Of a stretch of DNA of 64,000 bases, positions 31,400 to 62,687 are shown one piece after another (position 1 is the first letter of the stretch; each line of letters starts with the position of its first letter). The notes under the pieces were generated by a model. That model was not told the origin of the DNA. It made no database searches and was given only the letters and a program-made list of their open reading frames with translations. The translations under genes and the position numbers were made by a program. The DNA lies in IMG/VR virus record IMGVR_UViG_3300027963_000035, positions 62,001-126,000 of that record. One strand, written 5' to 3'.

Positions 31400-32083
31400 A
31401 TGAAAAAATTCATCGAGTGGGTTGAAGCAAACGAATCATTTTTTGGTAATCTTGCAACTGATATTGGTAAGATCGGAGGTATAGTTGCAAATACGATTCA
31501 AGGAAAAGAAAATGATCTACACAATGTTATGCGAGGAGATATTGTAAAAACTCCTCAAGGACAAAGAACTGTTGGTGGAATTAAAAATACAATTGTCAAT
31601 CCTTTGAAATATGGTGCATGTGGCGGAAGATCTTGTAGTAGAGGATCGGCCCCATCCTATGACTTTGACAGTGTGGATACTTCCCAGGGACATCAGCAGC
31701 TAGTTAACATCAAAGAAGCAGCTGTTTTTATCGAACAAAATACATATAACAGATTCATAGAAGAAAGAAAGTTAGAATCTAAAGTAAAATATCTTCCGCA
31801 AGAACTTGCGATACATGTTCATATACAAGGAGACTCTTCAACTGTAGGAAGTATCGAGGCCCTTGTTCAAAAGATTTATAATGAACTTAAAATAGATCCT
31901 TCTGTTAAATACGAACCTAATCTAATAACTGTAGGCCAGCAATTAGTTAAAAATAAAAAATCTGGTATTACAATCAACATACCAGCAGCAAAAACTGGCA
32001 GTTCTAGGCCTATAGCAACGCCGCCAAGTGTTGGTGTTGGTGCCGCCGCAGCCAGAAGACGAGATGCTGCCCGTAGACGATAA
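31400..32083 (+). CDS. Hypothetical protein with capsid-targeting-like N-terminus
   Basis: Starts MKKFIEWVEANE; TATATATA immediately upstream. Confidence 0.6.
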   Translation: MKKFIEWVEANESFFGNLATDIGKIGGIVANTIQGKENDLHNVMRGDIVKTPQGQRTVGGIKNTIVNPLKYGACGGRSCSRGSAPSYDFDSVDTSQGHQQLVNIKEAAVFIEQNTYNRFIEERKLESKVKYLPQELAIHVHIQGDSSTVGSIEALVQKIYNELKIDPSVKYEPNLITVGQQLVKNKKSGITINIPAAKTGSSRPIATPPSVGVGAAAARRRDAARRR

Positions 32084-32117
32084 TTTTTATTCAGAATAAT
32101 CTATATTAAGATTAATC

Positions 32118-33809
32118 ATGAATAAAAATATTACCCTTGTCACAGGTCTTTGGGATCTTAATCGAGAAAGCTTAGACGGCTGGGCACAAAGAAACTTTAG
32201 CGACTACAAGGCCAGATTTTTTGAGATGTTGGAAGTTGATGCTCAAATGTGTATTTGGATTCCAAAATCTCTGGAGCAGGAGGTTTTGGATATAAGAAAG
32301 GATAAGCCAACAAGAATATATTTTAAAGAAAATGAAGACTTTAAAACTTGGAATCCTTTCTTTGATAAAATACAAGAAATAAGAAAAAATGAGGAATGGC
32401 TATCTAGAGCAGGTTGGCTTAGAGAATCCCCTCAAGCAGCGTTGGAATTTTACAATCCAATGATGTTCACAAAAATGTTCATGTTAAATGATTCGTCCAT
32501 TTACAATCCATTTAAATCTGATTATTTCTTTTGGATAGATGGAGGATTGACAAATACAGTCCACCAGGGAACTTTTACACATGATAAGGTTCTCGATAAT
32601 CTTGATAATTATTGTAAAATTCAAAAGAAGTTTGTGCACATAACATATCCATATACCGCTAACGATGAAATACATGGCTTTGAAAGAAATGCTATGGCAA
32701 AATATTGCGGTGTTAATTATGTAGATTATGTTGCAAGAGGGGGATTCTTTGGCGGAAGAAAAGAACTAGTATCTCAAATTAATAGCCTTTATTATGGGGT
32801 TATGGAATCAACCCTCAGAGAAGGGAATATGGGCGCAGATGAGTGTTTATTTACAATACTATGCCATAGGCACCCTGCTTTGATTCATAGATACGAAATA
32901 CCGGGAAACGGTTTAGTTTATCCTTTCTTTGAGAATCTTAAAGAATTTACAAACGAGAAGGTAAAAGAAAATAAATTAAATTGTCAATCAGATACAGATA
33001 ACACTGCGCTTTACGTAATAACTTTTAACAGCCCCAATCAATTTAGAACATTATTAAAAAGCATGGAAGCATACGACTCTGATTTTCTTATAAAACCCAA
33101 GAAAAGATTTCTTCTCAATAACTCAACAGACTTGTCGAAGAATGATGAATACATCAAACTATGTGAAGAATATAATTTCGAGCATATTAAAAAAGATAAC
33201 TTGGGGATATGTGGTGGCCGACAATTCATAGCAGATCATGCGGAACAAAACGAATTTGATTTTCATTGGTTTTTCGAAGATGATATGTTCTTCTATTCAA
33301 ATAAAAATGAACCTCTTTGTAAAAATGGCTTCAATAGAATAACAGAGAATCTTTATTCTAAGTCAATGGAAATAGCAAACAAAGAAAGTTTTGATTTTTT
33401 AAAATTAAACTATACTGAGTTTTTCGGAGACAATGGAACTCAATGGAGTTGGTATAACGTGTCCCAAGATGTCAGAGAAAAGTATTGGCCAAATAATAAA
33501 AAGCTTCCTCAATTAGGAACCGATCCAAATGCTCCTAAGACTGTTTATAATAACATAAAAAGTCATCGAGGAGTTCCGTATACAAATGGAGAAGTTTACT
33601 ATTGCAATTGGCCCCAAGTAGTCTCCAGAGAAGGAAACAAAAAAATGTTTTTAGAAACTACTTGGGCTCATTCATACGAACAAACTTGGATGAGTTATAT
33701 TTACCAAGAAACTAAAAAAGGTAATATTCAAGGTGGACTTTTGCTCATGACACCAACCGAACACAATAGATTCGAACACTACTCGGCAGAATTAAGAAAA
33801 GAATCTTGA
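32118..33809 (+). CDS. HtrL/YibB-like domain fused to a GT-A glycosyltransferase-like domain
   Basis: ITLVTGLWDL, MFTKMFMLND...NPFKSDYFFWIDGG, ARGGFFGG, ADECLFT (HtrL/YibB-like); second domain with WFFEDDMFF DxD-type motif. Confidence 0.65.
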   Translation: MNKNITLVTGLWDLNRESLDGWAQRNFSDYKARFFEMLEVDAQMCIWIPKSLEQEVLDIRKDKPTRIYFKENEDFKTWNPFFDKIQEIRKNEEWLSRAGWLRESPQAALEFYNPMMFTKMFMLNDSSIYNPFKSDYFFWIDGGLTNTVHQGTFTHDKVLDNLDNYCKIQKKFVHITYPYTANDEIHGFERNAMAKYCGVNYVDYVARGGFFGGRKELVSQINSLYYGVMESTLREGNMGADECLFTILCHRHPALIHRYEIPGNGLVYPFFENLKEFTNEKVKENKLNCQSDTDNTALYVITFNSPNQFRTLLKSMEAYDSDFLIKPKKRFLLNNSTDLSKNDEYIKLCEEYNFEHIKKDNLGICGGRQFIADHAEQNEFDFHWFFEDDMFFYSNKNEPLCKNGFNRITENLYSKSMEIANKESFDFLKLNYTEFFGDNGTQWSWYNVSQDVREKYWPNNKKLPQLGTDPNAPKTVYNNIKSHRGVPYTNGEVYYCNWPQVVSREGNKKMFLETTWAHSYEQTWMSYIYQETKKGNIQGGLLLMTPTEHNRFEHYSAELRKES

Positions 33810-33851
33810 AATAAAATATATTAATTGTTATAATACAAAAAAGGAAAAATA

Positions 33852-34715
33852 ATGAGTGAAAAATTATTGACTATCGGAATGGCGACCTATGATGATTATG
33901 ATGGAGTGTATTTCTCTCTCCAAGCACTTCGCATGTATCACGAAGTATGCAACACTGATCAGGTTGAATTTTTAGTCATAGATAATAACCCAAAAGGTAA
34001 ACATGCCGAACCGGTTAAATCTTTTGTTAATAGTTGGGCCAGAGGAAGATATATCCCATATGAAGAAAAGAAAAGCACTGCAGTAAGAAATGAAATATTC
34101 AAGCAAGCAAAGGGCAAGTATACCATATCAATGGATTGCCACGTTTTATTTCAAAAGGGTGCAATAGAAAGTCTTTTGAAATATTATGAACAAAACCCTG
34201 ATTGCAAAAACATAGTTCAGGGACCTCTTCTTTATGACGATTTGCGAAATGAATCTACAAGCTTTTCTCCGGTCTGGAATCATTCCATGTATGGGACCTG
34301 GCACACAGATCATGAAAACTTGAAAAAAGGTGAGCCTTTTGAGATTCTCATGCATGGTCTTGGTGTTTTTTCATGCGAGACCAAGAATTGGGTCGGATTC
34401 AACCAGCACTTTAAGGGATTTGGCGGAGAAGAAGGTTATATTCATGAAAAATTTAGAACACGTGGGGGCAAAGCAATTTGTATCCCTCAATTAAAGTGGG
34501 TTCACCGGTTTGGTAGGCCCGAAGGCGTTAAATACCCTCTTGTTCTAGAGGATAGAATTTGGAATTATTTTGTAGGTTGGCTTGAATTAACATGCAACCC
34601 GGAACATGAAATGATAAAAGGAGCTTACAATCACTTCAAAGATAAGATACCTGCGGGAAGCATAGACAAGATTCTAAACAATGCTAAAAAGCTGGTCCTA
34701 GAATCACCAGGCTGA
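33852..34715 (+). CDS. Glycosyltransferase, GT2-like (GT-A fold)
   Basis: LTIGMATY, EFLVIDNNP, RNEIF..AKGKYTISMDCH, FKGFGGEEG. Confidence 0.82.
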   Translation: MSEKLLTIGMATYDDYDGVYFSLQALRMYHEVCNTDQVEFLVIDNNPKGKHAEPVKSFVNSWARGRYIPYEEKKSTAVRNEIFKQAKGKYTISMDCHVLFQKGAIESLLKYYEQNPDCKNIVQGPLLYDDLRNESTSFSPVWNHSMYGTWHTDHENLKKGEPFEILMHGLGVFSCETKNWVGFNQHFKGFGGEEGYIHEKFRTRGGKAICIPQLKWVHRFGRPEGVKYPLVLEDRIWNYFVGWLELTCNPEHEMIKGAYNHFKDKIPAGSIDKILNNAKKLVLESPG

Positions 34716-35909
34716 TGTTGAATATATCTTTTTCCACTTATTAACTTTGTTATCAGAAAGTCCGCAAGGAGTTGAAACCTGCTGGTAATTATTTCTTTCT
34801 GCTTGATACATGCTGATAAGATGTGCGATATCTTCTACTTCTCTTGATTCCCACCCCGCTGATAGTAAAGCAAATTTAACTTGTTCTATTGCTTTATCTT
34901 TCATCAACCAAGCAGAAGTTAAAAATCTATCATTGTAAGCTTTTTCTGGCACGTCGTCCACAGCTAAATTATCTAAAGGATAAACTGTATTTAAAAGACC
35001 TGTGTTTTTATACATATCCAAATATTTTCTGTCATTTATTTCGGGATTCTCGAGACCAAGAATGTATTCCCTTTTATAGTTTTTATTTAGATCGTTTATT
35101 TTTCCCATAGATTCGATGTGATCTTCAGGGATGTCTTCATTTCCGTATCTGGCTTGCATTCTTATATATCTATGTGCTGTCATTGGGTCATCTTCAACTC
35201 TTTTTGAGAACTTCCCGATAGAGATTATTTGACCATTTTTAAGATGATGAGCACCACCATAAACATCAAGTAGTTCTGTGTTTTCTCCTTCACTATTTTT
35301 AAGTGGAATATACATTGCATTTATTGTAAAGTCTCTTGATGCTGCATCGTCTTCTAAGCTTGATGTTGCTGAAAATCCATCAACATTTAAATTCCTATTC
35401 TTAATGGATTTTGACAAAGGAGATAATTCAAAGTTTTCTCCGTTAATAACAACTGTGAATTCTACGGGCTTATTTTTATCATCCATCCTACTGGCAAAGA
35501 AACTCTTGTTACTTCTCGGAGTCTGAGTTTCCTCAAAACCATTTCCCTTTAAAATTAATTTAATTTCGCTTGATGTGGCATCTGTTACAAGATCATAGTT
35601 TCTCGGGGTCTTTCCTTTTAGATGATCACGAACTGCCCCACCTGTTAAGTAGACGACTTTCTTTTTAAGTTTTGGTTCAACCTCACCATCTGTTTTATCC
35701 ATGGTGGTGTAACCAACACCTATTTGTGGGCTATTTTCGAAAGCTTTTATAAGCAATCTTAAACTGGGGTGGTTGTCTTTATCGATTACGAATGGTTGGA
35801 AATCTTCTACTCCTGGATTCCTAGCCAATTTAACTTTTGAAACTACCGGAATATTGTTCTCTTTGTAGTTGTTCTCTTTGTATAAAACGTAATCTTGAAA
35901 TTTTCCCAT
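34704..35909 (-). CDS. Class II tRNA nucleotidyltransferase/poly(A) polymerase-like protein with altered catalytic motifs
   Basis: GGAVRDHL and RDFTINAMY are present, but the catalytic DxD reads NYD and the EDxxR template reads DDPMT; N-terminus MGKFQDYVLYKE. Confidence 0.8.
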   Translation of the reverse strand: MGKFQDYVLYKENNYKENNIPVVSKVKLARNPGVEDFQPFVIDKDNHPSLRLLIKAFENSPQIGVGYTTMDKTDGEVEPKLKKKVVYLTGGAVRDHLKGKTPRNYDLVTDATSSEIKLILKGNGFEETQTPRSNKSFFASRMDDKNKPVEFTVVINGENFELSPLSKSIKNRNLNVDGFSATSSLEDDAASRDFTINAMYIPLKNSEGENTELLDVYGGAHHLKNGQIISIGKFSKRVEDDPMTAHRYIRMQARYGNEDIPEDHIESMGKINDLNKNYKREYILGLENPEINDRKYLDMYKNTGLLNTVYPLDNLAVDDVPEKAYNDRFLTSAWLMKDKAIEQVKFALLSAGWESREVEDIAHLISMYQAERNNYQQVSTPCGLSDNKVNKWKKIYSTSAW

Positions 35910-35954: not shown

Positions 35955-36230
35955 TCACACTGAAGGGCTTTGTATTCCCAATTTATACAATAGATATGAA
36001 GCAACAACCACCCAGAATATCTTGACTATAAAATCAATCAGTTGATCCCAATTTTGTTGAGATCTTGATGTCCTAAGATTAATTCCTTCCATTTTAATTT
36101 CAAATTCTTGAATTTTCTTTGAGAAAGAATCCATCTCCGATGACATTTCTTTTATTTTATCTTCAAAATGCTCGATTTTGTGCTCGATGCGACCCAAGTC
36201 CCCAGATTGATTTTTTCTTTTTTCGACCAT
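35955..36230 (-). CDS. Small coiled-coil protein with a C-terminal transmembrane segment (holin/XhlA-like architecture)
   Basis: Heptad N-terminal region, then hydrophobic LIDFIVKIFWVVVASYLLY. Confidence 0.5.
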   Translation of the reverse strand: MVEKRKNQSGDLGRIEHKIEHFEDKIKEMSSEMDSFSKKIQEFEIKMEGINLRTSRSQQNWDQLIDFIVKIFWVVVASYLLYKLGIQSPSV

Positions 36231-36279: not shown

Positions 36280-36753
36280 ATGGAAAATCAAGATCAAATT
36301 ATAATAAGTCAAATAGATGATGCAAAAGAATTAATACCTCAAATGAACGTAGACCTTCCGTCCGTTCAGAATCAAAATGATCTCTCTCACATAGTTTCTG
36401 ATGAAGAATTGGCTGGAGTCTACAGCGAGATTCTAAATAATATAAGAGAAGATAGAAAACAAATAGATGAATTTATAGGTAATTTTGCCGATCTCGTAAT
36501 AAATGAGGGCGACAGCACCAGTGCAAGCAAAGAAGCTCTTGTAAGTTTGGTTAAGATAAAAAGCGATGTAGCGGATAAAATGGCTAAAATGGCAGATTTA
36601 ATGACAAGAATAAAGTTAAAAGATAAGGATACCTTCCCTAAATACTTAGCAGCCAATCAAAATAATACAATAAATATAAATTCAGGAAACAATAAAAGAC
36701 AGTTACTAGAAGCGATAAATAAAGCAAAGAAAGAAGCAAAAGATGAAAATTAA
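36280..36753 (+). CDS. Hypothetical helical protein
   Basis: 157-aa ORF, AATATATATAG directly upstream. Confidence 0.6.
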   Translation: MENQDQIIISQIDDAKELIPQMNVDLPSVQNQNDLSHIVSDEELAGVYSEILNNIREDRKQIDEFIGNFADLVINEGDSTSASKEALVSLVKIKSDVADKMAKMADLMTRIKLKDKDTFPKYLAANQNNTININSGNNKRQLLEAINKAKKEAKDEN

Positions 36754-38053
36754 TACTTTAAATTGGTTTAATGAAGAACTTGGAAATCCAGGCGAAGCCG
36801 CAGGAGGACAGCCTCCTTCCGATGCTACTGGCGGCAATCAGGTGGTGATGCAAAACAACACCTCCGAAGAACCACCACAGGACCAAAATACAGATGGGGC
36901 CCCAGAGGAGACAGAGATAGAACTCCCAAAACAAGATTCTCCGCAAGATTTATCGCAAGAACCACAATCTCCCGACATCCCAGAAGAACAAGAGGAATCA
37001 GAAGATTTTGAAACTTGGAAAATAAGCTATTTTAAAAATCTAGTTAAAGGCGACACAAGTCTTTTATTAAATGATATTCATAAAATCAGGGATTATGATT
37101 TAGAGGCTTATCCAAGAAAGTTTGTTGAAGACAATTTACAGATTCTTTTTTTAAGACAAAATTCTAATATAGAAAAAGCTGGTAAGGATATAAGAAAATC
37201 TATCAGACAGGAATTGGATAACAATAATCCCTCGATGTCAGTTGTCAACCACATCTTCACCTCACTTCAGAGTTATTCTGATTTAACAAATGTATTTATT
37301 AAGCTGAAGGGAACACTGGGCATGAAGAGTGACCTTCACAGAAAATATTTGGCCTCATTATTAGGTGCGGCCCAAGTTGGCAGTGGAGGAAACTCCGAAG
37401 ATATCATTTACAATGAAAGAACATATTCAATAAAGATATCAACAAGATTCAATGAAAAATGGGGAATGATAGATTTAGGAAAATGGTCCTTAAGGGAAGA
37501 CGACCCAGAAAGATTTTTGGAGGATCCCGAACTCAAGAGGCTAGAAGAAGGCAGCCCAGAAGAGAGAGATGTTCTAAGAAGAAGAGTTATCATGGAAGCT
37601 ATTGCAGATAATTTCAAGCAAAGATCTTTCCTCATAAACGTAGTGGGAGTAGATGGAACCGTTTATTTTGTAGGTTTAGATCTCGGAAGCTGTCTAAGCA
37701 CCGCTTATGCAGACGGTAAATTGTCAGTAAGAACAATACAGTCGGAAAACAGTGAGGCTATGATAGATGATGATGGAAATGTTGTTCCGTATGTAGATTT
37801 AAAGATCAAGTATTTATATGAAACAGGGGAGATTGATGAGAATGGATTTCCTAAAAAAGGAGAGTCCGACTTCATTGAGAGGATAGATGGAATTTTATTT
37901 GTGACAGCTCAACTAGATACTCTTAAGCAGGCTGCTGCAAGTTTTCCTGGAGTCATTGTTAAAGAACTTCCCTTTAACGGTAACCCATCAGACTTGAAAG
38001 TCATACAGAGATGTGTGCCCAGTGCAGCTGAAATAATTTTAAGGAACTGCTAA
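36743..38053 (+). CDS. Hypothetical protein with acidic Pro/Glu/Gln-rich N-terminus; possible internal head protein
   Basis: 436 aa; starts MKINTLNWFNEE; about 85 aa low-complexity acidic leader. Confidence 0.6.
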   Translation: MKINTLNWFNEELGNPGEAAGGQPPSDATGGNQVVMQNNTSEEPPQDQNTDGAPEETEIELPKQDSPQDLSQEPQSPDIPEEQEESEDFETWKISYFKNLVKGDTSLLLNDIHKIRDYDLEAYPRKFVEDNLQILFLRQNSNIEKAGKDIRKSIRQELDNNNPSMSVVNHIFTSLQSYSDLTNVFIKLKGTLGMKSDLHRKYLASLLGAAQVGSGGNSEDIIYNERTYSIKISTRFNEKWGMIDLGKWSLREDDPERFLEDPELKRLEEGSPEERDVLRRRVIMEAIADNFKQRSFLINVVGVDGTVYFVGLDLGSCLSTAYADGKLSVRTIQSENSEAMIDDDGNVVPYVDLKIKYLYETGEIDENGFPKKGESDFIERIDGILFVTAQLDTLKQAAASFPGVIVKELPFNGNPSDLKVIQRCVPSAAEIILRNC

Positions 38054-38063
38054 GGGATTAAAA

Positions 38064-38570
38064 ATGTATAAATTTTTTGATTATATTAACCAATCGGAAA
38101 TGCAGGCTCATAGGAAGCTTAAGATAATAAGCGATCTATTGAAGAGTCAAAAGATAAAAAATAAACTATTTGACTCGGACCAAGAACCTCATATTTTTGT
38201 ATTTTCAACTAATCCCGATACTTATTTTCAAGGAGTTAGAGTATATCCTATTGCTAATTCTATAGCATTCAAGGTTCAAAACAAGACGAATACTCATCCT
38301 TATGGAAAGCCATATCTGCTGGACTTTGAGAAAATGTATAATAATCTCATGGGACAAAAAGATGCAACAGAAGATGACTGTGCAAAAAATATAATTGAAT
38401 ACATATGTGCTGAACTTAAAAAATTCTTCACTATGAGTGCCAAATATCAATATGAAAAGAATCCTGAAAACATTAAATTAATGGTCAGATCACAAGGAAC
38501 AGACTACTCAACTAAGTTGTTTGGTGGTGCATCCGGAGATTATTCCTCTAAAGTTTACAATGGGTATTAA
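38064..38570 (+). CDS. Hypothetical protein with capsid-targeting-like N-terminus
   Basis: Starts MYKFFDYINQSE. Confidence 0.6.
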   Translation: MYKFFDYINQSEMQAHRKLKIISDLLKSQKIKNKLFDSDQEPHIFVFSTNPDTYFQGVRVYPIANSIAFKVQNKTNTHPYGKPYLLDFEKMYNNLMGQKDATEDDCAKNIIEYICAELKKFFTMSAKYQYEKNPENIKLMVRSQGTDYSTKLFGGASGDYSSKVYNGY

Positions 38571-38571
38571 A

Positions 38572-38958
38572 ATGATAAGTTTAAATGATTATAAAAATTC
38601 TAAAAGCGTCAAGAGCCTAGTTCAGAAAATGTTTGAGGCACGCCAAGTGGCTCATGTTCACCATTTACAAACTAAAAGTTATAGTCAACATAAAGCCTTA
38701 AATGGATTTTATGATGGTATTCTGGATCTAGCGGATTCTTTTATTGAAACATATCAAGGTCAATATGGAATATTAAACGGATATGGAGATATTAGTATTT
38801 CTGATGTTGATATTGAAGATTATCTCCAAGATTGTGCAAAGATATTCATGCTTGGAAAAGATAGCATGAATGATAAAGACACTCATCTCAAAAATATTAT
38901 GGATGAGGTTGTAGCGCTAACTTACAGAACAATATATAAGATAAAGTATTTAAAGTAA
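38572..38958 (+). CDS. Ferritin-like four-helix protein (DUF5856-like)
   Basis: QVAHVHHLQTKSYSQHKALNGFYD.....ADSFIETYQGQYG...LKNIMDE....TIYKIKYLK; start moved to the ATG just after the upstream stop. Confidence 0.72.
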   Translation: MISLNDYKNSKSVKSLVQKMFEARQVAHVHHLQTKSYSQHKALNGFYDGILDLADSFIETYQGQYGILNGYGDISISDVDIEDYLQDCAKIFMLGKDSMNDKDTHLKNIMDEVVALTYRTIYKIKYLK

Positions 38959-38977: not shown

Positions 38978-39412
38978 ATGGACCTTATACAGGATGTTAA
39001 AAAAGGTAGTTTAGTTTCTTTTAACTACATGTTCCATAAGGCTGGTCATGATCCCAATCCAAATGTAATGGTAACAGCCGCAGACTCTTTTTATGTTTGG
39101 GGAATCAACGTTCATTATTTAACTTTCCCATATATAAGAAATCTATTACAAAAAAATTGTAATAATATTATGTTTGGTTACCCAAATATAAAGAGCGACA
39201 AATTTGTAACTTCGGCTTTTAGACAATACAAGAAAAATGGTATAAGGTCTTTAAAAAAACTTGATTGTGAATTTGTGTTAAATTTATTGGGATCTGCAAG
39301 GGCTCTCACTCCGGGAGAAGTTGAGGCTATAAGAAATACAATTAATGATCAAGTGAATCAGGCCATTAATCAAGTATCTGCGTTGAATCCCAATTCTAAT
39401 ATTTTAAGATAA
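38978..39412 (+). CDS. DNA end protector-like protein (T4 gp2-like)
   Basis: G..V.F.Y...DP.P.V...WGINVHYL...AFRQY...IRS pattern recalls the gp2 G(L/I)NxHYL motif. Confidence 0.6.
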   Translation: MDLIQDVKKGSLVSFNYMFHKAGHDPNPNVMVTAADSFYVWGINVHYLTFPYIRNLLQKNCNNIMFGYPNIKSDKFVTSAFRQYKKNGIRSLKKLDCEFVLNLLGSARALTPGEVEAIRNTINDQVNQAINQVSALNPNSNILR

Positions 39413-42285
39413 TCGCTAAATGATACCGCTTCCTCCATAGATTTGGAGGCAGCCTTTGCTATTAAATTCTTAATTTCTTCATCTATTTTATTTGCTTCTA
39501 CTTGAGTATCAATTAGCTTCTGTAGCAGCTTTTCATCGGCCTGAACATCTTGGTATTCTTTTCTGTATCTTTGGATAATTTCTGCAAGCTTCCTTTTACG
39601 CTGAACTGCTTCATAGATTTCGGTGTCTAGACCCGGTGCTAGTGTATAATCTATCTTAACGGAGTGGTTGGTGTTGATTCTGTATATTCTTCCCTCACTC
39701 TGCTCAGAGCTTTCAGGAGTCCAATCAAAGTCATTGACGATCATATTCTGAGCTGCGTTGGGAAAACTTATCCCAGTTCCACCCATTTTCATACTCATTA
39801 CAAGTGCTTTTGCATTGGGATCATTTGTAAATAGTTCTTTAACCTTTTCTCTTTCTGCTTTCTTTGTGCTAGAAAGGTATGTTATTACTTTAAAATTAGG
39901 ATTAATTTCTTTTAATTTAGCTGATAACTTGTTGTTTATTTGTTCGCCGGATTGAACGAAGTTTGTAAATATGACAACTTTACTTGCTGCGTAATTGTTT
40001 TCTGATTTTTCTTTATTTGAATTTATTATTTTCAAGGCTTTATCTACTGTGGAATCCACCTTTAGATGAGCAAGGATTTCTCTTGAGGCTATTAATTCTG
40101 ATATTGCTAAATTGGGATCCTTATAAGCCTTGAGTTTTTCTTTTAATTTTTTACTAAATTCTGATGTGTCTACGTCAGTTGTGTATGCATTAACTTCAAG
40201 ATTGGGCATTTCTCTTAATTCATTCTTTGTTCTTCTGACATAGACTCCCGATAGATTTAACCATCGATTTAGTTTCTCAGCGGCTTTGATCTTATCTCTA
40301 AATGTTCCTTCAATATAACTTCCACCATAACCACCGGGCACCATGCCCGCAAAATCTTTTTTAAACTTTCCTTCTTTTATGGAGCCGAGTGGGTGGCCGA
40401 TCATAATCAATTGATTCTTTACGTCCATAGGCTTGTTTGCACTTATTGTTGCACTGGCGCCCCATTTATAAGGTATGTTCTGAGTTGCGACGAGTATGTT
40501 CTGGCTTCTTTTGGACGTGCTGTGTTTTAGTTTGTGAAGTTCATCAAATATTGCTATTTCAAAATTTGTCCCGCTGACTGACTTGACAACATTATCCACT
40601 TGTTTTCCACTTGAAAAATTGTCGTAGTACAGAACGGTCCACTTCTTTGGATTCAATGCATCAGTTGAGATTTCGGATTTATCTCCTACAACATTTTTTA
40701 TCTCATCTACCCACTGCTGTTGAACCGATTTCAATGTAATCACAAGAGTTTTTGCGCCAGGAGTGTCTTGCATCTTCAACTCCGCAGCACTTATAAGCAT
40801 TGCAGTTTTTCCATATCCTGTTTCATCACCAAGTATTGCGTGATGTCTGCCGTACAAGAAGGTCACTCCATCTTTTTGCTGATCATATAATTCAAACTTA
40901 GATTCAGGTAGTTTTTCTTCTATTTTATCTTTTAATCCTTCTGGAACTTCCCCTTCGTATTTTGTCTTTTTGACTCCGCCATTTTTAAGTTTAGTTTGTA
41001 GGATTAGTTTAAGACTATTTGGGTTCTGCGTGTAATTGTCTGTTATTTCAAACATGTAACCGAATTTTTTAAGTGTTGCACCAAAAGATACATATTGTTT
41101 AAAATTACCCCTAACGATATAAGAATAGTTGTCTCTATCCCATTCGTAATTTGGAAATGTGTATTGCACAAGTTCCCTAAGGAACTCTTTTTGTTGAGGA
41201 GATACTCTTGTGTATAATATTTTTATATGAAGTTTATCGTCTCTTCCCTTGGAAGGATCTGTAAACTCTATTCTCTCACTGGCAGGCGCACTCTCGGATC
41301 CTTTTGTTGGTTTTTCTTCTTCTGAAGGATCGTCCGCAGATTGAACTGATAATTGATTCTTTTCCACAAAATCATCTATTGGTTTGGCATCTATTCCAAA
41401 TTCACTGAACTTTTTGATTACTTGGTCGTGAATCTTTCTATCCAATGATAATAAGAATCTTGTTGGGTTTCTTTCGTATGCCATTCCACTTGGAGAAAGT
41501 CCTGCTGCCTTAACCGCATCAAATAAGGCTTTACTTTTTTCAAACGGAACATTAAACTGTATGGCAAGCCTTTTGCCATATCTCTGGGTTTCTTCTACTC
41601 CTATAACATTAACATCTGAGGATGATCCGGTGTTTATTCCCGGGGCGGCAACTGCAGCCGATGCTCCTATTTTTTTAACGCCTATCTTTTTCTCACCCGC
41701 TACTAGTTCCACTATCTCATCAATGACTTCGGGCGAAACATAGTATGTATCTAGTGTGTTTTTATCTTGACTGAAGTATCGCCATGCTTCATATTGATGT
41801 TTTCCAAATTTATTTAAAGTTTTTTGGAGATTCTTTTTTTGTACTATTATCGCTTCTATTCTCCTGGATAGAGCTTTATCTATGCCTCCGGGAATTAAAA
41901 CTTTCACCTTGCCGTATTGTTTAGGAGCATTGTTATCAATTGTTATTTTGTCATCTTCTTGATCATGGAGCGACAATGAGTCTTTTATGTCTTTATTAAC
42001 TGCTGCCTTGATATCTTCATAATGAGTTACTTGGGTCTTTTTATATCTGTTTAATATTGATAAAATATTATTTGCCATTGCAACGGGTATGGTGTCTTCA
42101 TGATATTTTGGATCGCTAGTTATTCTCTTAAAAGACATAAAATCAGGCTTATTAAATCCTGTATCATCATATTCTACTGGGGCTCCTCTGCTGAACATTC
42201 CATCAAATGTGGATTTAAGCAATTGTATGCCAGGACCACCGACAAGATTTTCTTGATTCTCTACATAATTTTTAAATAAACTCAT
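39370..42285 (-). CDS. SNF2-family helicase/ATPase with a long N-terminal extension
   Basis: LYDQQKDG (Q motif), GDETGYGKT (Walker A), IFDELH (Walker B), SAT, KVVIFTNF, GGTGISF, DFDWTP...QSEGRIYR; N-terminus MSLFKNYVENQE. Confidence 0.9.
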   Translation of the reverse strand: MSLFKNYVENQENLVGGPGIQLLKSTFDGMFSRGAPVEYDDTGFNKPDFMSFKRITSDPKYHEDTIPVAMANNILSILNRYKKTQVTHYEDIKAAVNKDIKDSLSLHDQEDDKITIDNNAPKQYGKVKVLIPGGIDKALSRRIEAIIVQKKNLQKTLNKFGKHQYEAWRYFSQDKNTLDTYYVSPEVIDEIVELVAGEKKIGVKKIGASAAVAAPGINTGSSSDVNVIGVEETQRYGKRLAIQFNVPFEKSKALFDAVKAAGLSPSGMAYERNPTRFLLSLDRKIHDQVIKKFSEFGIDAKPIDDFVEKNQLSVQSADDPSEEEKPTKGSESAPASERIEFTDPSKGRDDKLHIKILYTRVSPQQKEFLRELVQYTFPNYEWDRDNYSYIVRGNFKQYVSFGATLKKFGYMFEITDNYTQNPNSLKLILQTKLKNGGVKKTKYEGEVPEGLKDKIEEKLPESKFELYDQQKDGVTFLYGRHHAILGDETGYGKTAMLISAAELKMQDTPGAKTLVITLKSVQQQWVDEIKNVVGDKSEISTDALNPKKWTVLYYDNFSSGKQVDNVVKSVSGTNFEIAIFDELHKLKHSTSKRSQNILVATQNIPYKWGASATISANKPMDVKNQLIMIGHPLGSIKEGKFKKDFAGMVPGGYGGSYIEGTFRDKIKAAEKLNRWLNLSGVYVRRTKNELREMPNLEVNAYTTDVDTSEFSKKLKEKLKAYKDPNLAISELIASREILAHLKVDSTVDKALKIINSNKEKSENNYAASKVVIFTNFVQSGEQINNKLSAKLKEINPNFKVITYLSSTKKAEREKVKELFTNDPNAKALVMSMKMGGTGISFPNAAQNMIVNDFDWTPESSEQSEGRIYRINTNHSVKIDYTLAPGLDTEIYEAVQRKRKLAEIIQRYRKEYQDVQADEKLLQKLIDTQVEANKIDEEIKNLIAKAASKSMEEAVSFSDYLKILELGFNADT

Positions 42286-43012
42286 GATGAAATATATATG
42301 AGTTTAATTTGAATTTTGGCCTCAAAACTTTTCTTTTAACATTTTTAAATTTTAGTAATCTTTCCCAATTATGTGTGTATGTATGGAATATTATCGCATC
42401 CATATATTCAAAGTCATTGATATTTTCTGGTATCTTAACATGATTTCTTTTAAAATAATTTTTATTTATATTATCATCATGAACTATTTGACTCATTAGG
42501 AATTCTTCCCTCACCCATTTATTATATCTCTCAAGCCAAACCCATAGTTCGGGGTGGGTTTCTTTTATTTTATTGAGCTTATCATTAAAGTCTTTGTATA
42601 TTTTTTTGTTAGATCCATTTCTAAACAATAGCACGCCTGAATTAATGGGCTTAAATAATTTAAAGTCTGCACTATAGGCCCACTTGTTCTCACAGCCCAC
42701 AATATCTTCTGGGTATTTATTTATTATTTTTTCTATATCATCAAATATAAAAGTGTCACTATCTATGTAAAATATATTGTCAAAGTCCAAATCGGCTAGA
42801 TATTGTTTGTTTGCTGGGAAGTATTCTGGGTCTATGTTCTTCACATACTTTGTTTCAACCATCAATTCTTCTGGAAACATGGTCTCATCATGTGTGCAAA
42901 AACATATTATTCTTATATTTTTGTTGAATTTTCTAAGCATTTTGATGCTATTAAGAGCCATTTTATGGTAATTTAGATTACCGTTTATTATGTAAACTAC
43001 CACAGAAGTCAT
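42272..43012 (-). CDS. Glycosyltransferase, GT8-like
   Basis: MALNSIKMLRKFN, FYIDSDTFIF (DxD), INSGVLLF, IIFH. Confidence 0.72.
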   Translation of the reverse strand: MTSVVVYIINGNLNYHKMALNSIKMLRKFNKNIRIICFCTHDETMFPEELMVETKYVKNIDPEYFPANKQYLADLDFDNIFYIDSDTFIFDDIEKIINKYPEDIVGCENKWAYSADFKLFKPINSGVLLFRNGSNKKIYKDFNDKLNKIKETHPELWVWLERYNKWVREEFLMSQIVHDDNINKNYFKRNHVKIPENINDFEYMDAIIFHTYTHNWERLLKFKNVKRKVLRPKFKLNSYIFHHEFI

Positions 43013-61303: not shown

Positions 61304-62536
61304 TTATGTATTATTTCTAAAATTAGAATATTCATCATCATTCATTCTGTCGCTTATTTCTTTTCCTTTTAAATGCATATAATCTTCTGATTTTGTGACT
61401 TGCTTATACATTAAAAAATATTTGATCTCTCTCTGTAGACCACTTATCTTACCAAATTCCATAAAAGATTTTTTAAGCTTGTCGCTTAAATTATCCCTCA
61501 TCCTTATCATTCTTATGATATTAGATTTATTTAAATCATAAGCTACTTTTAGAATAAACGCAACTGTGTCTGCTATTTCATTTGAATATTTTAATTCATT
61601 TAGTTTTGATCTTAATTTATTTGGATCATTATTTTTAAAAATTAGACTCATCACCGCAATTGGATCGTGAGAATCTATCTCTGAGCTTAAATCAACATTC
61701 AATCCGGGAAAAATTGTTGACAATAAATCTAACGCCTTATAGTTCATAATATAATTTTTAACATTCTTGCATTTACTCAACCCCGACAAAAATTCATTTG
61801 CAATTCTTTCTCCACTAACACCTTTTAAATCTTTGAATTTCTCAACTGCACTTATTGTTTTTTGATCTAAATGACTTGTAATAATGTCATCGTTGAATCT
61901 AGAGAAGAATCTAACAAGTCTCAACACTCTAAGTTTATCCTCTCTGAATCTTTCCTCGGGATCACCAACACTTCTAACAGAAAGATTCTTTATATCTTTG
62001 AATCCCTCGCCCTCTCCTTTGTGATCGAGGTTATAATCACGGATTTGCTTATCTTTTAAATCATAAAAGAGGGCGTTAATGTTGAGATCTCTGCGTTTTG
62101 CATCCAAACCCGGGCTGCTATATGAGACTTTATCGGGTCTTCTTCCATCTCCTTTTTCTGGATCGTAAAACTCGGTCCTGAATGTTGCTATTTCGAATTC
62201 TTTTCCATTTATAATGGCGCTTATTACACCAAAACTTTCTCCTTTTGGAAAAACTTTTATTCCATTCTCTACTGCTTCTTTAGAACTCAGTATTTTGATC
62301 ACCTGATCCGGTGTTTGATCCGTTGCCAGGTCAACATCTTTCGGATTATACGGAACATGCTTTTGATGAAATATGTGATACAAGTAATCTCTTATTGCGC
62401 CACCAACTGCGTATAATTTTGCTCCAAATTTTTTAAATATATCACTTAAAATGTCTACTTCTGATGGCATTGGTATGGAAGCACTCATTGCATGGTACTG
62501 TTCTTCCTCTTTTAGTAGCCAATTTTTGAATTTCAT
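61304..62536 (-). CDS. cca: CCA-adding tRNA nucleotidyltransferase (class II), catalytic motifs intact, no HD domain
   Basis: GGAIRD...KDVDLAT (DxD), FEIATFR, RRDLNINALFY, RFREDKLRVLRLVRF (EDxxR), VSGERI; start moved to MKFKNWLLKEE at 62536. CCA vs poly(A) specificity cannot be proven from sequence alone. Confidence 0.82.
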   Translation of the reverse strand: MKFKNWLLKEEEQYHAMSASIPMPSEVDILSDIFKKFGAKLYAVGGAIRDYLYHIFHQKHVPYNPKDVDLATDQTPDQVIKILSSKEAVENGIKVFPKGESFGVISAIINGKEFEIATFRTEFYDPEKGDGRRPDKVSYSSPGLDAKRRDLNINALFYDLKDKQIRDYNLDHKGEGEGFKDIKNLSVRSVGDPEERFREDKLRVLRLVRFFSRFNDDIITSHLDQKTISAVEKFKDLKGVSGERIANEFLSGLSKCKNVKNYIMNYKALDLLSTIFPGLNVDLSSEIDSHDPIAVMSLIFKNNDPNKLRSKLNELKYSNEIADTVAFILKVAYDLNKSNIIRMIRMRDNLSDKLKKSFMEFGKISGLQREIKYFLMYKQVTKSEDYMHLKGKEISDRMNDDEYSNFRNNT

Positions 62537-62687
62537 GTTATTTTTGCTCAACATTTGATGGTTTCCAATATATACTATGGAAATAGTAATAAAATTGATC
62601 AAAATCACTAAAATCAATTGAATATTAGCTTAAAATATACAAATATAAAAGTAAAATTGCTTTACATAGGCCAAAAAAGGATAAAAA

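Follow-up and report, generated by a model that had tools for sequence, protein, structure and literature searches.

A 401-amino-acid (aa) protein encoded on the minus strand of a 64,000-nucleotide (nt) window (positions 62,001 to 126,000 of IMG/VR virus record IMGVR_UViG_3300027963_000035; coordinates below are those of the window) is probably a maintained pseudoenzyme derived from a class II CCA-adding enzyme. On this reading it no longer transfers nucleotides and is kept for binding at the old cleft, most plausibly of the acceptor 3' end of a tRNA or pre-tRNA. The catalytic loss and the maintenance are read from sequence evidence: every metal- or nucleotide-side element except the glycine loop is replaced in the clade to which the protein belongs (hereafter the substituted clade), and the fold and cleft are still under selection. 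The parent record (251 kb, about 50% complete, 36% G+C) derives from a freshwater huge phage, which is also represented by a 323-kb record; genes in the window include those for baseplate, tape-measure-like and tail-fibre proteins, glycosyltransferases and an SNF2 helicase. The sequence of the gene recurs in many independent freshwater and lake metagenomes, all of them DNA data sets; no RNA run was listed for it.

The open reading frame (ORF) is uninterrupted, and a GGTG ribosome-binding site lies 8 nt ahead of its ATG start codon. Its product scores 71 bits (cut-off 23) against the Pfam PolyA_pol head domain PF01743 [E 1.2e-19] and also hits the PHROG "tRNA nucleotidyltransferase" family. In class II enzymes two metals are held by a DxD pair and a third carboxylate, and the triphosphate is bound by the glycine loop together with basic residues; RRD touches the ribose, and EDxxR serves as the template for the base. 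These roles are as reportedly described by Li et al. 2002 and in reviews by Betat and Mörl. The corresponding features of the window protein are as follows.

34704..35909, minus strand: full ORF, predicted to encode a catalytically disabled class II CCA-enzyme homolog (PF01743 match, AlphaFold2 model, VIA-align comparison, homologs).
35655..35909, minus strand: N-terminal extension, residues 1–85, a hallmark of the huge-phage clade shared with canonical sisters such as P0123.
35580..35642, minus strand: motif A, G90–D110, with GGAVRD kept and N104-Y-D106 in place of DxD (HMMER alignment, clade conservation).
35412..35438, minus strand: strand E158–S166, with the third-carboxylate position at E161 and L165-S166 in place of F-R (clade comparison).
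35310..35348, minus strand: motif B region, D188–Y200, with S191-R-D in place of RRD; R192, D193, T195, N197 and Y200 are invariant.
35238..35273, minus strand: motif C region, L213–K224, with D215, G218 and G219 kept and a clade-specific GGAHHLK (clade alignment).
35160..35201, minus strand: motif D/E region, R237–R250, with D240-D-P-M-T244 in place of EDxxR and R247 kept (clade alignment).

The motifs were placed by residue-by-residue HMMER alignment to solved CCA-adding enzymes (6ibp, 3aqk) and E. coli poly(A) polymerase. The original prediction, made from the window sequence without database searches, had noticed an Asn in place of the first metal-binding Asp, SRD for RRD, ELSPLS for the E-x-x-T-F-R strand and DDPMT for EDxxR, and all four stood up to this comparison. 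Codon 104 is indeed AAC (35598-35600), and the strand reads F160-E-L-S-P-L-S166. DxD, [TS]FR, RRD and EDxxR are all present in about 100 canonical representatives within the same alignment, and therefore the deviations are not alignment noise. The glycine loop is intact as GGxVRD, with G90, G91, R94 and D95 invariant. The set of three catalytic carboxylates, made up of DxD and a Glu or Asp from an adjacent strand, is broken, even though the window protein itself retains E161; motif B, which is RRD in all canonical relatives, reads SRD; and the EDxxR amino-acid template for CTP and ATP reads DDPMT. Three catalytic motifs that define the family are thus missing, and the protein should not be filed as a CCA-adding enzyme.

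The substitutions are not peculiar to this phage. A search of 5.8 billion proteins gave 212 related clusters at E <= 1e-5, the ORF being intact throughout, and residues were counted over the best 120 of these, which extend down to 41% identity over full length. Asn is found at position 104 in 111 of the 120 clusters and Thr at position 244 in 100, as the original prediction had proposed checking. D106 is kept in 101 (Asn in 17), S166 likewise in 101, and P242 in every one, giving a clade consensus of [ED]-D-P-x-T. Position 191 is occupied by N, G, T or S and never by R, and position 161 is E in only 31 clusters. When 121 sequences of the substituted clade were compared with 16 of its canonical sister group, the sites fixed in both groups yet differing between them included D104N, R166S and R244T, position 244 being R in all of the canonical sequences. 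Position 161 is relaxed (conservation 0.26 against 0.94 in canonical proteins), and P242, E150, R141 and an N-terminal hairpin (G66–P79) are newly constrained; residues 46–85 as a whole score 0.75 against 0.46 in the sister group. At equal redundancy the conservation profile peaks at motif A (0.92) and motifs B–C (0.80), values as high as or above those of the sister group.

The gene is maintained under strong purifying selection, as judged from its nucleotide and protein sequences. Against the closest DNA relative (L007) dN is 0.085 and dS is saturated; since this saturation makes pairwise dN/dS past the closest pair unreliable, we relied instead on strain-level single-nucleotide variants (SNVs). 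Two other lake metagenomes yielded 19 of these within the gene, of which 17 are synonymous and only V108A alters the protein; two fall in one codon, which still specifies Leu with both applied. That the protein is a decaying pseudogene or a chance deviation might be supposed from the absence of the canonical catalytic residues; the ORF intact across clusters, dN/dS far below 1, the single protein-changing variant among 19 and a confident structural model refute this. The original prediction had likewise taken the full-length ORF to be maintained, and the random decay among orthologs that would have spoken for pseudogenisation is not seen, the substitutes being conserved. An alternative genetic code or a frameshift was also rejected, as the ORF is conserved and translates cleanly with table 11. 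A homolog of an enzyme family which lacks residues essential for catalysis and is held by purifying selection shows both features of a pseudoenzyme that can be computed.

The protein was modelled with AlphaFold2 from the family alignment, at a mean predicted local distance difference test score (pLDDT) of 92.5. Over nearly its whole length the model resembles class II CCA-adding enzymes [Foldseek E 4e-13], with VIA-align Z scores of 25.3 to human TRNT1 and 21–24 to bacterial enzymes. Neck and body domains are present, and approximately 60 extra residues precede the head relative to the solved enzymes. The alignment covers TRNT1 residues 3–347 and residues 1–324 of the Bst enzyme, and ends at residue 358 of the Thermotoga maritima protein, from which it follows that the last 50–60 residues of the tail domain are absent; this loss had escaped the original prediction. 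P0121, a clade member of 493 aa (pLDDT 92.4), aligns to TRNT1 3–395 and T. maritima 1–409, and thus has a full tail. The model of P0121, complete from head to tail, indicates that the entire architecture is retained in the clade overall, and by these models the truncation appears confined to the sub-clade of about 400 aa to which the window protein belongs. The substituted and canonical proteins cannot be told apart by the net charge of their N-terminal, head and body regions, so that charge carries no information on RNA binding. Look-alikes of the N-terminal 86 residues in the ESM Atlas were unnamed viral clusters only.

The pocket has lost its positive charges and metal ligands and is conserved nonetheless, and the end of the tail is gone in the window sub-clade. 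These two facts would suit a binder or sponge of a small nucleotide-like ligand unrelated to tRNA, such as a host immune signal. We regard this as highly improbable, and it is purely speculative: most members of the clade keep the complete tRNA-enzyme architecture, tail included, and no defence or anti-defence genes were found in the context of the gene.

The ancestry of the protein can be traced. A profile search of 1.84 billion representatives, followed by a motif table, identified a phage clade of CCA-family proteins that have the N-terminal extension in common, along with the signatures GGAVRDHL and GGAHHLK. Canonical proteins are among them: P0123, which shares 39% identity with the window protein over the full length, N-terminus included, carries DYD, EIATFR, RRD and EDQLR, and a further canonical N-extended homolog is encoded by GenBank phage LR756511.1. 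A maximum-likelihood tree calculated with the motif columns removed placed the window protein in a clade of 14 representatives, none of which has DxD [ultrafast bootstrap 100; Shimodaira–Hasegawa-like approximate likelihood ratio test 99], and a quick tree made the substituted clade sister to the canonical P0123, P0124 and P0127. Deeper members of the clade have lost the second Asp as well (NYH, NYQ, KYN, NYT), and also the RD of motif B (RC, RN), and are still full length. Across the N-extended phage family the DxD state changes approximately nine times (bootstrap range 8–10). The independent losses differ in pattern (NIE, HIE, DYH, KYH and DYN, among P0121–P0170 and L046–L064), and several of these lineages retain the templating Arg.

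Gene order tells the same story of descent. Among 53 IMG/VR loci, 42 with the substituted and 11 with the canonical N-extended type, the same neighbours flank the CCA-family gene in 50–52, which argues that the substituted form arose in place from a resident canonical enzyme. By tree and synteny, then, it descends from an N-extended CCA enzyme which belongs to the syntenic core of a lineage of freshwater huge phages and which sister phages retain in canonical form. On current sequence data the clade is essentially restricted to phages, since among 185,579 bacterial and archaeal species genomes only two contigs of metagenome-assembled genomes (MAGs) carry relatives. One, the only substantial match, is a 48-kb contig (L206, JAYVUD010000138.1; 44% identity) binned with a Chloracidobacterium MAG; it is either phage DNA placed in the wrong bin or a pointer to an Acidobacteriota host. 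The second, from Omnitrophota, measures 2.5 kb.

The phage also carries a second, canonical gene.

61304..62617, minus strand: CCA-adding enzyme with DVD, ATFR, RRD and EDKLR [PF01743, E 3e-22]; 62617 is a TTG start, and the likely ATG start is at 62554 or 62536.

The original prediction had named this gene (as 61304-62536), and had called the 401-aa protein a CCA-enzyme paralog. Homology to the CCA family holds, but a close relationship between the two does not: they are 25% identical and fall in different clades, so that a recent duplication of the 61304 gene was rejected, and the 401-aa protein is instead the resident N-extended enzyme, its catalytic residues having been lost in place. Orthologs of the canonical enzyme occur in other genomes with the substituted form, namely G018 (89% identity), G004 (67%), G013/G044 (50%) and G005 (45%), which together with the window phage cover four divergent sub-lineages of the substituted clade. 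In three genomes which are 98–100% complete, the canonical N-extended enzyme is the sole PF01743 gene. This distribution fits a hand-over of catalysis and subsequent loss of the catalytic set.

One might have expected the substituted protein to be the active enzyme's partner, as the original prediction also proposed, perhaps as a regulator or an obligate subunit without catalysis that forms a heterodimer, such as the pairs of dead and active nucleotidyltransferase-fold proteins seen elsewhere. Both genes are in one phage, and their co-occurrence in the four sub-lineages is accompanied by similar divergence (89/67/50/45% for the canonical and 83/43/43/45% for the substituted form). Where both could be placed, however, they lie 13 to 268 kb apart, and phage G002 (532 kb, estimated by CheckV as 100% complete) has the substituted form and no canonical PF01743 gene. 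An active partner encoded by the phage is thus not a strict requirement of the substituted protein, and the proposal of an obligate partnership is now improbable. It also follows that G002 must use the host enzyme, unless its own protein is active after all.

The tRNA genes of these phages lack an encoded CCA. In G002 (loci L146–L175) the acceptor stem is followed by N73-C74-T75 in 43 of 46 distinct tRNA genes, none of which encodes CCA. The same holds for 46 of 51 distinct tRNA genes in G009 (loci L176–L205), a related huge phage which, like G002, is about 530 kb in length and has the canonical N-extended enzyme only. In the genome of the window phage (G000) the trinucleotide follows two of six tRNA genes, those for tRNA-Glu and tRNA-Lys outside the window. 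N73-C74-T75 may be a 3'-processing signal. ARAGORN further finds in G002 three tRNAs of the amber-suppressor type, whose anticodon is CUA, and another whose anticodon has four bases; TAG may be recoded in this phage. The window phage also has, again outside the window (G000:C1 208765-208832), an odd 68-nt tRNA-like gene to which ARAGORN assigns no anticodon.

With the catalytic and nucleotide-templating residues gone, a non-catalytic role becomes the leading explanation. We suggest that the 401-aa protein no longer adds nucleotides, and that CCA addition to the products of the CCA-less tRNA genes would be carried out by the 61304-62617 enzyme or by the host enzyme. The protein would have retained a non-catalytic job already held by the ancestral enzyme, most likely that of holding, sorting or shielding the acceptor 3' end of tRNA or pre-tRNA by binding it in the old cleft. 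As the end of the tail is missing in the window sub-clade, binding would here rest on the acceptor end and not on the tRNA elbow. The original prediction had included a catalytically dead tRNA-binding protein among its options; the residues lost agree with the catalytically dead part, tRNA binding would be an extrapolation, and the shield, decoy and new-specificity functions which it named are guesses.

Several observations weigh against this interpretation. The case for tRNA binding comes entirely from retention of the fold and general knowledge of the family, and the portion of the tail which is absent from the window protein is the elbow anchor of canonical enzymes. The second enzyme accompanies four of ten records with the substituted form and none of six with the canonical N-extended form, which is suggestive only [Fisher estimate, p ~0.2]; these are records of at least 130 kb, small in number and mostly fragments. 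The replacements (Asn, Ser, Pro, Thr) are specific and conserved instead of random, and would also fit a remodelled pocket with a new chemistry or ligand. A new acidic residue, E150, is fixed in 95% of the substituted clade where the canonical sister group has Val. Finally, G002 possesses 59 CCA-less tRNA genes along with the substituted form only, a combination that an active protein would account for more readily.

These last points bear on whether the protein is still a transferase with a rewired site, in which a single metal is held by N104 and D106 (plus E161 here, or E150) and a pocket formed by S166, S/N191, P242 and T244 selects a different nucleotide or a donor that is not a triphosphate. 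The G002 genome, the strong conservation of specific substitutes, the cleft being the most conserved part of the protein and the retention of D106 in 84% of clusters would all favour it. The canonical-invariant Arg residues at 166, 191 and 244 are, on the other hand, all lost together with the first metal ligand, the third carboxylate is unconstrained, and deep members of the clade dispense with the second Asp and the RD of motif B besides. We are aware of no report of an active class II enzyme carrying NxD, and the literature searched yielded none. A rewired transferase accordingly seems rather doubtful to us.

A possible elaboration of the pseudoenzyme interpretation, to which we give less credence than to its simpler form, is that the whole N-extended family has a second, non-catalytic job at the tRNA 3' end, so that catalysis could be dropped 8–10 independent times. 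The clade of the window protein would then comprise dedicated tRNA-end readers with a remodelled pocket (N104/S166/N191/P242/T244). The second job may be reading or shielding of mature or aminoacylated CCA ends, or binding of the N73-C74-U75 trailers of phage pre-tRNAs, and such a reader could act in tRNA sorting or in protection from host defences which target tRNA.

In Pfam head, head-neck-body fold and structural similarity (Z 20–25) the protein is like the class II CCA-adding enzymes of Geobacillus stearothermophilus (1MIV), human (TRNT1, 4X4W) and Thermotoga maritima (5HC9). It keeps, as they do, the GGxVRD loop, the second Asp, the RD of motif B, the D..GG of motif C, the Asp of motif D and the Arg of motif E. 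It is unlike them in the first metal Asp (Asn), the Arg of F-R (Ser), the first Arg of RRD (Ser/Asn), the templating Arg (Thr, after an invariant Pro) and the unconstrained third carboxylate, besides the N-terminal addition and the shortened tail. With its N-extended canonical sisters (P0123, the LR756511.1 homolog, L046, L053 and L059) it has in common the neighbouring genes, GGAVRDHL and GGAHHL, and 39% identity over the full length, but these sisters keep DxD, EIATFR, RRD and EDxxR.

The presence of two class II members in one genome recalls the split CC- and A-adding pairs of Aquifex, Deinococcus, Bacillus halodurans and S. pombe. There the catalytic carboxylates are intact in both partners, which differ from each other in templating and in the flexible loop. 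Here, by contrast, only the 61304 enzyme has DxD, and the substituted form also occurs alone, in G002. The DZF domains of NF45/NF90 and the proteins MiD49/MiD51 likewise have a Pol-beta-type fold from which the catalytic carboxylates have been lost and which is conserved for binding roles; they are unrelated eukaryotic sub-families with different partners, and the resemblance is by analogy only. We are not aware of any conserved, catalytically stripped branch of CCA-adding enzymes, nor did the literature searched contain a report of an inactive class II CCA-type clade. A match on tRNA-dependent DNA hypermodification proved to use the CCA enzyme only as a reagent. Surveys of jumbo and huge phages list CCA enzymes as tRNA-repair genes and note no inactive clade (PMC7824862; PMC7162821).

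The genes which flank the CCA-family gene are the following.

35955..36230, minus strand: 91-aa coiled-coil protein with a hydrophobic C-terminal helix, directly upstream across a 45-nt gap; a homolog adjoins the gene in 50 of the 53 loci.
36280..38570, plus strand: three divergently transcribed genes for proteins of 157, 436 and 168 aa, present in 52 of the 53 loci, substituted and canonical.

The coiled-coil protein gave only weak XhlA-like PHROG matches, the three divergent genes had no Pfam or PHROG match, and in the ESM Atlas the 436-aa product hit nothing but clusters of viral hypothetical proteins. Just past this syntenic block are genes for a Dps/ferritin-like DUF5856 protein [38521-38958, E 4e-20] and for a protein weakly similar to the gp2-like "DNA end protector" [38978-39412, E 6e-5]. 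The surroundings are rich in glycosyltransferase genes (31400-34715 and 42272-43012), one of which converges on the CCA-family gene and overlaps its 3' end by 12 nt; glycosyltransferases and sugar-modifying enzymes adjoin the gene in close relatives too (L003). Short head-only PF01743 proteins of 229–260 aa, with canonical DxD, RRD and EDxxR, are encoded beside the N-extended gene at L084 (G017), L085 (G007) and L117 (G039).

CCA-adding enzymes are textbook essential catalysts, and the clade described here is most likely, from the sequence comparisons above, a previously undescribed pseudoenzyme branch of this well-known family. Members of it (P0005, P0010, P0031, P0112 and others) are called "tRNA nucleotidyltransferase/poly(A) polymerase" in the JGI source annotations, where automatic annotation has not flagged the missing catalytic residues, so that the number of active CCA enzymes may be overestimated in inventories of huge-phage translation genes. 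At one locus the orthologs range from canonical through partly substituted to fully stripped, and they constitute a natural mutational map of nucleotide chemistry versus tRNA binding. That a syntenic core gene in hundreds of huge-phage contigs has repeatedly lost its Asp pair points to an unrecognised non-enzymatic role of this fold in the manipulation of the tRNA pool by phages.

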